Shown here piece by piece: positions 50,879-53,800 of a stretch of 64,000 nucleotides of DNA. The notes beneath the pieces are model-generated. The model was not told the origin of the DNA, did not search any database, and worked only from the letters and a program-made list of their open reading frames with translations. Origin of the DNA: Ministeria vibrans ATCC 50519 (lineage: Eukaryota > Protista > Filasterea); the NCBI GenBank assembly GCA_943704425.1, contig CALSCP010000491.1:72849-136848 (forward strand). Reading direction: 5' to 3'. Every line of letters begins with the position of its first letter. The stretch's first letter is position 1. The translations under genes and the position numbers were made by a program.

Positions 50879-53800
50879 ATGGCGCTTGCTTGGCATCCAC
50901 GGCTGGGTGATGTGTTTGCGTACGCGAAGGGGGATAGCGTGAAGCTGTTCCGGGAGGACGAAGATGGACAGGAGCAGATTGAGGATGCGCTGGCGGAGAT
51001 GGGTTGGGACGATATAGAAGGTTTGTCTGGTCTTGCTGTCACTCCAGATGAGCAATTTCTGGTCAGCATGTGTTCGGACATAACTCTCATGGTGTGGGAA
51101 TTGAAGAATCACGCACATGTGCGAACTGTTGAGACTGGCCACACACGGTACGATTGTTTGTTTCTGTGGTTTCTTCTCATTTGATTGTGTTGTTTTCACA
51201 GTGCAATCTATTGTGTGTCAGTGTCTCCCGATGGACTGAGAATGGTCACTGGCTCAGACGACAGCACTTTGAAAGTGTTTGTGTTTGCAAGTGGAGAGTG
51301 TGTTATGACTCTCACTGGACACACACGGTAAGACATTTGTCCAAATGAGGTTTGTCTGATTTCTGTTTGTGTTCTCTCTGTAGATCCGTTTCCTCGTGCG
51401 AATATTCGACTGATGGACTGTTCATTGCGAGTGGATCATATGATGGCACAGTGAAAGTGTGGAATGCGCAAACGGGAGTGTGCACAATCACTCTCACTGG
51501 TCACTCACAGTAAGTGTGTTTGTGATATTCTTTGGTTTCGACTGATGTCATTCTTTTGTTAGTTTCATCTTCTCAGTGGTTTGGTCTCCTGACAATTCAC
51601 AAGTGCTCAGTGGCTCAGCAGACAACACACTCAAACTGTGGGACCGTGAGAGTGGAAAGTGTCTCATGACACTCACTGGACACTCAGAGTAAGACAAATC
51701 CACTCATTTGCACTCTCATCCAATTTTCTTTTTCTCGTTTTTAGCTTTGTGCGTTCAGTTGATTTCGCACCGAATGGACGGAATGTGCTCAGTGGCTCAG
51801 GTGACAACACAATCAAACATTGGGACATTAAGAGTGGAAATTGTATCGTCACTTTCACTGGTCACTCACAGTAAGAATAATAACCAATTCTGAATCACTT
51901 TTTAATGTCTTATTTAGGTCTGTTGAGTGTGTGAAATATTCACCAAACGGAATGAAAGTGCTCAGTGGATCACATGACAACACTGTAAAACTATGGTATG
52001 TTTTGAGTGGAGAGTGCGAGCGCACCTTTGTGGGACACACAGGGTAAGATTGAGAATGAGAAGAGACAAAATGCACTTGAGTGTGTGTGACTCACTTTTG
52101 GAAATGTGTAGCGGCATTACCTCATTGGCATTCACTCGCAATGGACTGACTGTCTACACTGGCTCTCATGACAATACCATTCTCGTGTGGTCTTGTGCGA
52201 AGGGAACGCACATTGAAACACACTCAGTCGAACAGTCAGTGCTCAACTCAATCACATTTCTGTTCGACCATCTCACTCCTTTCTTTCCAGTGCTCTCAAA
52301 TCGATTGAGTTCTCTTTGGAAGGAGACACACTCTACATTCACACTGGATCAGGCACAATTGATTGGTCTGTTTCCGATGCGTTGAAACTGATTGACCCGT
52401 ACGAGTCAGTACTTCATTTCATTCTCCTCATTGGTTATCTTCTCTGTAGTGACTCAGTCTACCACTCTGCGTTCAAGTCAGCGCTGGCTCGTGGGTCAGT
52501 GGAGTCTCACGCACTGAAAGTGCTGTTCCTAGGTGCGGTGATGGCGGGCAAGACAGCACTTCTTGCGGCACTGCAAGGACGACCATTGCCCAAGGATCAA
52601 GACCGGTCAGTGGCCACTCGAATGCAGCGCATGCGACTTGTGTTCAACAAGGAGGGGGGCTTCTTTGAGGCAGTGCCGGTGGGCGAGTACCGTCTCAAGA
52701 GCATGATCGGGAAAAAGAGTGAGGCGGTGGTGGTGATGGCGGAGGAAGGGGAAACTGCAGGTGCGAGTGAGTCTGCTCCGAGTAGAGCAAGCGACACAGC
52801 AGCATTGAGTCCACCGCCGACAACAACAGCAACCACAACAACAACTGCTACCAGTATCACCACTTCGGTTTCTCCCACCGCCATCTCCACTCCCACTGCT
52901 CTCACGATGAGTGCAGTTCAAGAGCTGCTCAAGGGTAAACTGAGGGAACATCACATTGACCTCGACACTTTCGACTTTGCCGGTAAGATTGAAGAATACG
53001 CTAGATTTTGTTTCCGTTTTTTATTTATTGTTTTCCCCCTTTCTTTCGTTCTCAGGTGAGCCCATGTTTGATTCACTCCCCGCGCTTTTTATGGGCTCCG
53101 AGTCCGCCTACATCCTCGTCTTTGACTTGTCCGTCATGGGCGACGCCACACAGGCACAGCGACAGTACGAGCACTTGTCCAAGTGGGCTCACCTGATTGC
53201 GCATCAAGTGCCCGAGACCCGCTCGTCGTACTTCCGTGTGCTCATTGTGGGCACCCACCTCGACACATTTCCTGACGACATCGCGCCATCTCGGCTGCTG
53301 CGTGCCGTCTCTCGAGAGATCCGTAGTCTGATTGGACCTGTGTTGGGCAACCACTTGATTCTGCCAGAGTCTGGTCGCACTCCGTTCTTCCAAGTGGGCA
53401 GTGAGAAGCACATTGGCCTGCGCGAACTCAGCGAGGGGATGCATGCTGTAGTGCGTGGTCGGCGATTGCCAATGGAGTATGTGTGTGCGCAGGATCTGGT
53501 TGGTCGGTGGTCGCGGATGGGCCGCATTGAGCTGCTTTCTTCTGTCGCTGATCTGCCGAGTGTCGTTTTGAGTGAGACCACACCGGTCATCACAGTCGGG
53601 TCGCTGGTTCCCGACGAACACGCACTGCGCACAGGACTGGTGCCATACCTTGAGGAGGCTGCAGATGTGTTGGTGTGTCGTGAGGACTCGAGTGCGCGAG
53701 GCGTGTGTGCTTCGGACACGATCGTGTTTGATGTGCCGCGTCTGATTGCAGCCGTTGAGTTGCTGTGCTCGGTGGTAATGGCGCAGTGGGAGCGAGCGAC

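Follow-up and report, generated by a model that had tools for sequence, protein, structure and literature searches.

Hypervariable codons on the predicted binding face of WD40 propellers in a divergent Roco family of the filasterean Ministeria vibrans

Animals, plants, fungi and bacteria build their intracellular receptors for immunity and cell death on STAND ATPases. The candidate immune receptors of the LRR-ROCO type from brown algae (Ectocarpus, Saccharina; LRR: leucine-rich repeat) instead form an expanded family in which a Roc-COR module is preceded by a repeat sensor, with each repeat encoded by one symmetric phase-2 exon (PMC11378527) and four binding-face positions per repeat under diversifying selection (Zambounis 2012; Teng 2024, PMC11378527). 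The HNWD/NWD NLRs of the fungus Podospora anserina (het-e, het-d, het-r) are likewise a multigene family (PMC1805685, PMC2873952), and four codons of the NWD repeat, namely 7, 9, 25 and 27, are strongly selected, forming two pairs that flank conserved residues (PMC1805685). Here we describe a gene from the filasterean Ministeria vibrans that shares with the brown-algal receptors the repeat sensor preceding Roc-COR, the expanded family, the one-repeat-per-exon layout in phase 2 and the four variable binding-face positions, and with the fungal ones the multigene family. It lies at 50879-55102 of a 64,000-nucleotide stretch of contig CALSCP010000491.1 (hereafter the window, in whose coordinates all positions are given) and encodes an N-terminal WD40 propeller followed by a Roc-like GTPase, a COR domain and a unique helical tail. 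We consider it probable that the gene belongs to a duplicated Roco family in which the top face of the WD40 propeller is a diversified recognition surface, shaped by site-specific selection and not by exon shuffling.

A one-blade-per-exon array with hypervariable codons

The center of the propeller is encoded by five plus-strand exons of exactly 126 nucleotides (nt), each in phase 2-2: r1 (51202..51327), r2 (51384..51509), r3 (51563..51688), r4 (51745..51870) and r5 (51918..52043). Every one of them exceeds the cut-off of 27 bits of the Pfam WD40 family (PF00400), with scores of 35.2, 37.8, 39.8, 39.2 and 37.4 bits, respectively, and corresponds to a single structural blade with strands a-d. 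The introns of this array are 54, 56, 53, 56 and 47 nt long, have GT..AG borders throughout and share one phase-2 position, after the second base of the codon following GH[T/S]. Both the exons and the common intron position had been proposed in an initial annotation made from the sequence alone, and both are borne out by the splice borders, the RNA junctions and the individual Pfam matches. The same annotation had called the exons identical, which holds for their length; in sequence they share pairwise only 53-68% of their nucleotides and 37-56% of their residues, and this identity marks them as old repeats rather than recent duplicates. It had also delimited the array as 51148-52240, the end of which falls 6 nt inside the next intron. 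The phase-2 series in fact runs from the 3' end of the first coding exon (50854..51147, plus strand) through the five 126-nt exons to two further blade exons. That first coding exon, recognized by its RNA junction and translation, encodes an N-terminal blade-like segment and blade b0, ends in GHT at phase 2 and shows weak Pfam matches to WD40 propellers and 9.4 bits with a hidden Markov model (HMM) of the blade. On the other side of the array, exon b6 (52112..52234, plus strand, 123 nt, phase 2-2) encodes a degenerate WD40 repeat (27.3 bits with the blade HMM; RNA junctions 52043>52115 and 52234>52291), and the last blade exon, b7 (52291..52398, plus strand, 108 nt, phase 2-2), is supported by its translation and the junctions 52234>52291 and 52398>52450. 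Counted exon by exon, this gives about eight blade-like segments. Because a genome-wide WD40 scan finds uninterrupted repeats in the other WD40 genes of this organism, the one-blade-per-exon layout is particular to this Roco family.

The gene is expressed and spliced as modeled. Contigs of four public runs, i.e. three RNA-like runs from two studies and one DNA run, were mapped to 49400-55300; the list of RNA junctions comprises the best 15 of 28, and contigs can miss rare forms. All junctions of the gene model are present in the RNA contigs (three runs, two studies) and none in the DNA run. Within the array they were mapped as 51326>51384, 51509>51567, 51686>51745 and 51868>51921, and the junction 52043>52112 as 52043>52115.

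To locate variation within the blade, the three closest independent pairs of arrays were compared (window/C2355, C916/C1344 and C1443/C1080). In these, four blade positions, namely 1, 3, 19 and 21, stand out with a proportion of non-synonymous differences (pN) of 0.23-0.47, whereas no other position exceeds 0.09. At these four codons 64 of 180 nt differ, against 11 of 643 in the introns (Fisher p = 1.5e-35) and 20 of 555 at scaffold third positions (p = 8.8e-27); the Jukes-Cantor-corrected distance is 27.8 times that of the introns and 13.1 times that of the scaffold third positions. The codon split by the intron constitutes a fifth variable site, changed at 10 of 12 junctions and each time non-synonymously. 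In the window's r1 the hypervariable codons lie at 51203-05, 51209-11, 51257-59 and 51263-65, with the split codon made up of 51326-27 and 51384. These are the sites after GH and around GS-x-D which the initial annotation had singled out as variable among the repeats of one gene, and they turn out to be hypervariable between paralogs, at about 28 times the divergence of the introns. The contrast is extreme; in the pair L030-L031, for instance, the introns show no differences in 209 nt and the hypervariable codons 21 in 60. A copy on a metagenome scaffold differs by 0-3 mismatches per 150 nt (<1%) over most of the rest of the gene and by about 4% in the array. The blade scaffold, on the other hand, is strongly conserved: among 54 blades D20 is retained in 53, H40 and S18 in 51 each and W26 in 49.

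By the rules of PMC3419727, positions 1, 3 and 19 correspond to R1-2, R1 and D-1, the hotspots generally required for binding at the top face of WD40 propellers (PMC3419727), and position 21 corresponds to D+1. The hypervariability is site-specific and lies on the predicted binding face. The possibility that the compared copies are alleles instead of paralogs was considered and rejected: in the near-identical pairs L030/L031 and L023/L024 the sequences upstream of the gene are unrelated, which makes the members of each pair separate loci, paralogs and not haplotypes.

The Roc-COR module, the paralogous family and its outputs

The gene model comprises 11 exons and encodes 1212 residues, from the ATG at 50879 to the TAA at 55100-55102, with no in-frame stops and GT..AG borders at all 10 introns. 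Downstream of the propeller come, in this order, the P-loop (GAVMAGKT), an insert of low complexity, the motifs DFAG and THLD, a long region resembling COR and a tail of 126 residues. The first half of Roc is encoded by exon 52450..52982 (plus strand; RNA junction 52982>53056), which contains the P-loop at 52532-52555, a Thr/Ala-rich insert of low complexity and, at its 3' end, the G3 motif DFAG, whose Gly codon is divided by the intron; Pfam found nothing for this exon. The large exon 53056..54648 (plus strand) comprises the second half of Roc, with THLD at 53253-53264, and COR, as indicated by an AlphaFold2 (AF2) model, Foldseek and matches within the genome. The predicted local distance difference test (pLDDT) of this model is 70-90 over residues 140-515, i.e. 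the COR part, and its first 17 Foldseek matches in the PDB are all Roco proteins, the top ones including the C. tepidum Roco protein (6hlu, E 3.4e-5), LRRK1 (8e05, E 4.5e-5) and a COR domain (3dpt, target TM-score (TMt) 0.57). The occurrence of the three motifs in the expected order and the exclusively Roco matches of the modeled COR fold agree with the initial annotation, which had predicted a Roco protein. We accordingly accept the gene as a divergent Roco, with the COR domain after Roc recognizable at the level of the predicted fold only, while the Roc domain appears supported by motifs and context and not by a profile score. In the intronless paralogs, Pfam Roc reaches 19-21 bits (cut-off 27). 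No NACHT domain was found by Pfam in the window's gene, and the modeled fold points to a Roc-COR GTPase as the switch.

A search for paralogs, as the initial annotation had suggested, revealed a multicopy family: for the large COR exon, the 29.7-Mb assembly contains 69 matches, which are distributed over about 50 contigs and range in identity from 91% down to 31%, and the genome contains 40 or more Roc-COR paralogs. The census covered 20 loci, followed by four further loci and one metagenome scaffold. The same array of 126-nt AG/GT phase-2 exons lies upstream in 10 of the 20 loci as well as in the four further loci and on the scaffold, and at least 15 arrays with this exon layout are known in total, including that of the window and one from the metagenome scaffold. 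In other family members ankyrin repeats or LRRs take the place of the WD40 repeats. At the opposite end of the protein, the exons following COR match Peptidase_C14 above the cut-off (21.4 bits) in seven of nine other paralogs, with 22.9-40.8 bits, and one intronless paralog also matches it, with 21.7 bits. The window's own last exon (54720..55102, plus strand; RNA junction 54648>54720) encodes the 126-residue helical tail and the TAA stop. A single-sequence model of this tail is all-helical and of low confidence (pLDDT 57), and against it Foldseek yielded nothing below E 1.6. A death fold was considered for the tail; the lack of a paralogous exon and the low-confidence helical model speak neither for nor against this idea.

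Further observations concern individual family members and WD40 loci elsewhere in the genome. Locus L015 (G000:C2822:43650-52750) contains a same-strand series of three very long open frames without introns: the first encodes LRRs, the second a weak Roc match with NB-ARC and DUF7779, and the third, complete with 1075 residues and 80% identical to the window's COR, a Roc-COR-caspase protein. It looks like a compound or clustered NLR/Roco locus. The copies L036 (C1679) and L037/L040 (C524), where AT or AA replaces GT after some blade exons and, in C524, one blade has a shifted frame, may be pseudogenes within the family. The paralogs L026 (G000:C894), L023 (C916) and L021 (C312) are adjoined by large unrelated genes, namely genes for a DUF3638/DUF3645 protein of 1496 residues, for an EGF-repeat protein containing at least 15 EGF modules and for a protein that combines F-box and TPR. 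On seven short contigs (C1718, C1507, C1114, C268, C2204, C1481 and C2464), WD40 matches of the one-blade-exon type lie no more than a few hundred bases from the contig starts and may represent either orphan blade exons or pieces of additional family members broken up in the assembly. At G000:C2017:48266-48886, five high-scoring WD40 repeats (54-57 bits) stand exactly 126 nt apart in one 1092-residue open frame; this gene may carry an array like those of fungal NLRs, in which the internal WD40 repeats are highly conserved.

In the window, the coding exons are preceded by a plus-strand 5' non-coding exon at 50660..50765, its 5' end approximate, which has no ATG and is defined by the RNA junction 50765>50854 (mapped as 50762>50851, cut +3). 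Further upstream, a spliced minus-strand gene (CT..AC junctions) occupies 49520-50403; its four introns are short (52, 51, 62 and 54 nt), and one of them is apparently GC..AG (CT..GC on the plus strand, at 50018>50081). A PB1-SAM gene still further upstream was considered as a potential N-terminus and rejected, with this minus-strand gene located in between. At the other end, a downstream minus-strand transcript has its poly(A) end at about 55095, just before the stop codon of the Roco gene, and plus-strand RNA contigs reach 55212; together these imply a 3' overlap between the two convergent genes. A short N run, i.e. an assembly gap, lies at about 46530-46545 within a Gly/Glu/Asp-rich open frame.

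Selection, recombination and alternative explanations

These observations can be combined into a tentative mechanistic scheme. The N-terminal propeller of about eight blades, one per exon, in this highly divergent 1212-residue Roco protein is predicted to use its top face as a ligand-recognition surface. In each blade the same five codons, i.e. the intron-split codon, R1-2, R1, D-1 and D+1, are hypervariable between paralogs, while the scaffold, introns and synonymous sites stay nearly identical. The repertoire would be made at the level of the family, with its 40 or more Roc-COR genes and at least 15 arrays of the same layout, through whole-gene duplication and strong diversifying selection on the hypervariable codons, with recombination or gene conversion among the paralogs as a probable contributor. 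By analogy to other receptors, a ligand, probably foreign or non-self, would bind the propeller and switch the Roc-COR GTPase, which in most paralogs tested would control the C-terminal caspase-like protease; the overall scheme would thus resemble NLR- or apoptosome-like logic on a GTPase. The window copy, which has no protease, may use its unique tail for signaling or have a regulatory role. In all likelihood, the symmetric 126-nt phase-2 exons represent an old, fixed legacy of the origin of the array by exon duplication.

Several points weigh against this interpretation. At the sequence level, Pfam assigns no family to the window's Roc and COR exons at E values up to 0.05, a profile of 12 paralogous COR exons has no match among PDB sequences at E values up to 10, and phmmer, too, does not see the Roc-COR module: searched with the COR exon against 1.84 billion representatives, it returned four matches, one of them full length, on a metagenome scaffold. 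With so few matches, sequence searches are uninformative on the spread of the family beyond this lineage. The window's last exon has no Peptidase_C14 match in Pfam and no paralog in its own genome. The blade number of about eight comes from exon-by-exon counting rather than from a whole-propeller fold and is accordingly approximate. Contig data cannot separate paralogs from alleles and cannot reveal rare isoforms, and should gene conversion homogenize the array, the copies may be older than the divergence of their introns suggests. In this regard, the high array identity between the window and C2355 (93%) contrasts with an identity of only 50-75% in several of the flanking regions, and within the array scaffold and intron sites favor the grouping of the window with C2355, whereas the hypervariable sites favor C1679, by 6 to 2. 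Lastly, the ligand, the GTPase activity and the output are all postulated by analogy, as is a function in non-self recognition.

The alternative that fares best concerns the window copy itself, which might be a derived, effector-less member of the family, such as a decoy, a regulator or a decaying gene, and not a working receptor. Its last exon has no counterpart elsewhere in the genome and, unlike nearly all of the paralogs tested, encodes no caspase domain; moreover, beyond about 54370 the copy loses most of its identity with its closest relatives. However, its frame of 1212 codons is intact, it is transcribed and correctly spliced, including the unique tail, in two studies, and both its WD40 scaffold and its G motifs are conserved. 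We therefore regard this alternative as unlikely.

Somewhat less credible is a directed or templated origin of the hypervariable codons, either by very short gene-conversion tracts from the pool of paralogs or by targeted mutagenesis. This would account for the extreme ratio of changes between L030 and L031, for the two to three nt that differ in about half of the changed hypervariable codons (19 of 39), and for hypervariable states which are shared among copies in a mosaic pattern and group these copies differently from the surrounding scaffold. Nevertheless, neither donor cassettes nor template repeats were seen, the informative sites are few, and the hypervariable codons, being 3-48 nt apart, are hard to fit with conversion tracts, while in large populations of protists selection can maintain very high rates of substitution. 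The changes also affect all three codon positions without a single-base signature; on this ground, adenine-specific mutagenesis like that of diversity-generating retroelements was rejected informally. It is thus quite doubtful that five codons per blade are diversified by a directed process in what would be a eukaryotic germline counterpart of the bacterial diversity-generating systems, operating on a repertoire of GTPase-based immune receptors.

Recombination does occur in the family, at a coarser scale. The window and C2355 form a mosaic, being 88-97% identical across the array, including the introns, and about 50-80% identical in the preceding exon and in the blade and Roc exons that follow. 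Likewise, COR groups the window with C1679 (91% versus 81%) and the array DNA groups it with C2355 (93% versus 85%). Such conflicting groupings cannot tell apart gene conversion of the scaffold with selection keeping the contact residues, convergence, and a directed process.

The initial annotation had favored yet another route, in which the symmetric one-blade exons are skipped, duplicated or swapped, by alternative splicing or by genomic shuffling, to diversify the sensor. All blade exons are indeed in phase 2-2 and multiples of 3 nt, so that the frame would be kept; the 72-nt phase-2 LRR exons of the brown-algal ROCO genes show both shuffling and alternative splicing (PMC11378527); and the mosaic identity between paralogs attests to recombination within the family. 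However, the blades themselves speak against it. Their number and order are the same in all 15 arrays, and for 47 of 54 blades the nearest blade in another gene is the one at the same position. In a maximum-likelihood tree of 74 blade exons, computed with the hypervariable codons removed, the position labels change 12 times, against a possible minimum of 4 and a mean of 45.5 after shuffling of the labels, with none of 200 shuffles as low. Furthermore, the blades of one gene are no more than 53-68% identical to each other, and the best 15 of 28 RNA junctions all join neighboring exons, without any instance of exon skipping, though contigs miss rare forms. A closed WD40 propeller also tolerates few changes of blade number. 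Exon shuffling as the diversifier is thus very improbable: the claim of a diversifiable sensor holds insofar as the propeller is diversified between paralogs, and is not supported as to the proposed route.

Finally, an ordinary scaffolding WD40 protein with unconstrained surface residues in neutral drift is highly implausible. The variable positions do fall within surface loops, where constraint on WD40 repeats is generally lowest, and the sensor function is itself putative. However, drift cannot exceed the neutral rate, and the divergence of these codons is 13-28 times that of synonymous and intron sites in the same DNA; they coincide with known ligand-contact positions (PMC3419727) and frequently encode Trp (6 of 54 blades) or Tyr (5 of 54) at position 19, and the gene belongs to a family of 40 or more members in which most paralogs tested carry caspase outputs.

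Comparison with known receptor systems

Whereas the brown-algal LRR-ROCO proteins carry an LRR solenoid encoded by 72-nt exons, the Ministeria proteins have a WD40 propeller encoded by 126-nt exons, with fixed blade number and order and neither shuffling nor, among the best 15 of 28 RNA junctions, alternative splicing seen, and a Roc-COR module too divergent for Pfam. In addition, a caspase domain is present in most of the Ministeria paralogs tested, whereas LRR-ROC-COR is the sole domain combination reported from the brown algae (PMC11378527). A eukaryotic Roco-caspase or a hypervariable Roco WD40 domain is not described in the searchable literature.

The parallels to the Podospora NLRs extend to the selected codons: codons 7, 9, 25 and 27 there and 1, 3, 19 and 21 here have equal spacing, with pairs 16 codons apart flanking conserved residues, and are predicted to lie on the top face in both. 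The fungal family is also linked to cell death, a link which would be provided here by the caspase domain of most paralogs tested. In contrast, the fungal proteins combine a NACHT ATPase with a C-terminal sensor, and the Ministeria ones a Roc GTPase with an N-terminal sensor. Moreover, the fungal repeats are near-identical and evolve in concert, while those studied here are 53-68% identical within a gene, evolve by position, show no variation in repeat number and are each encoded by a separate exon. The four-site signature of diversifying selection, which the WD40 sensor shares with the fungal allorecognition NLRs, would be a clear case of convergence, and the family offers a clean test of binding-face codons that diverge about 28 times faster than the adjacent introns.

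With LRRK2, LRRK1 and Dictyostelium Roco4 the gene shares the Roc-COR fold, the THLD motif as G4 and a WD40 propeller in the same chain. In those proteins, however, the propeller is C-terminal, after the kinase, and not hypervariable, whereas the window copy has neither a kinase nor LRRs. For Roco biology, including that of LRRK2, the family provides a natural example of a repeat domain that apparently serves as an input sensor.

The logic of a WD40 or other repeat sensor, NTPase switch and caspase-type protease is the same in the Apaf-1 apoptosome and the bacterial AP-GTPase/STAND conflict systems (PMC7159879). Apaf-1, however, relies on an AP-ATPase and brings in a separate caspase by means of a CARD, whereas in the Ministeria paralogs the protease is fused to the GTPase switch in one chain, in a eukaryote. 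A single-celled eukaryote appears to have a receptor repertoire comparable to the STAND-based ones on a Roc-COR GTPase instead, with dozens of genes, interchangeable WD40, ankyrin and LRR front ends and, in most paralogs tested, a built-in caspase-like protease.

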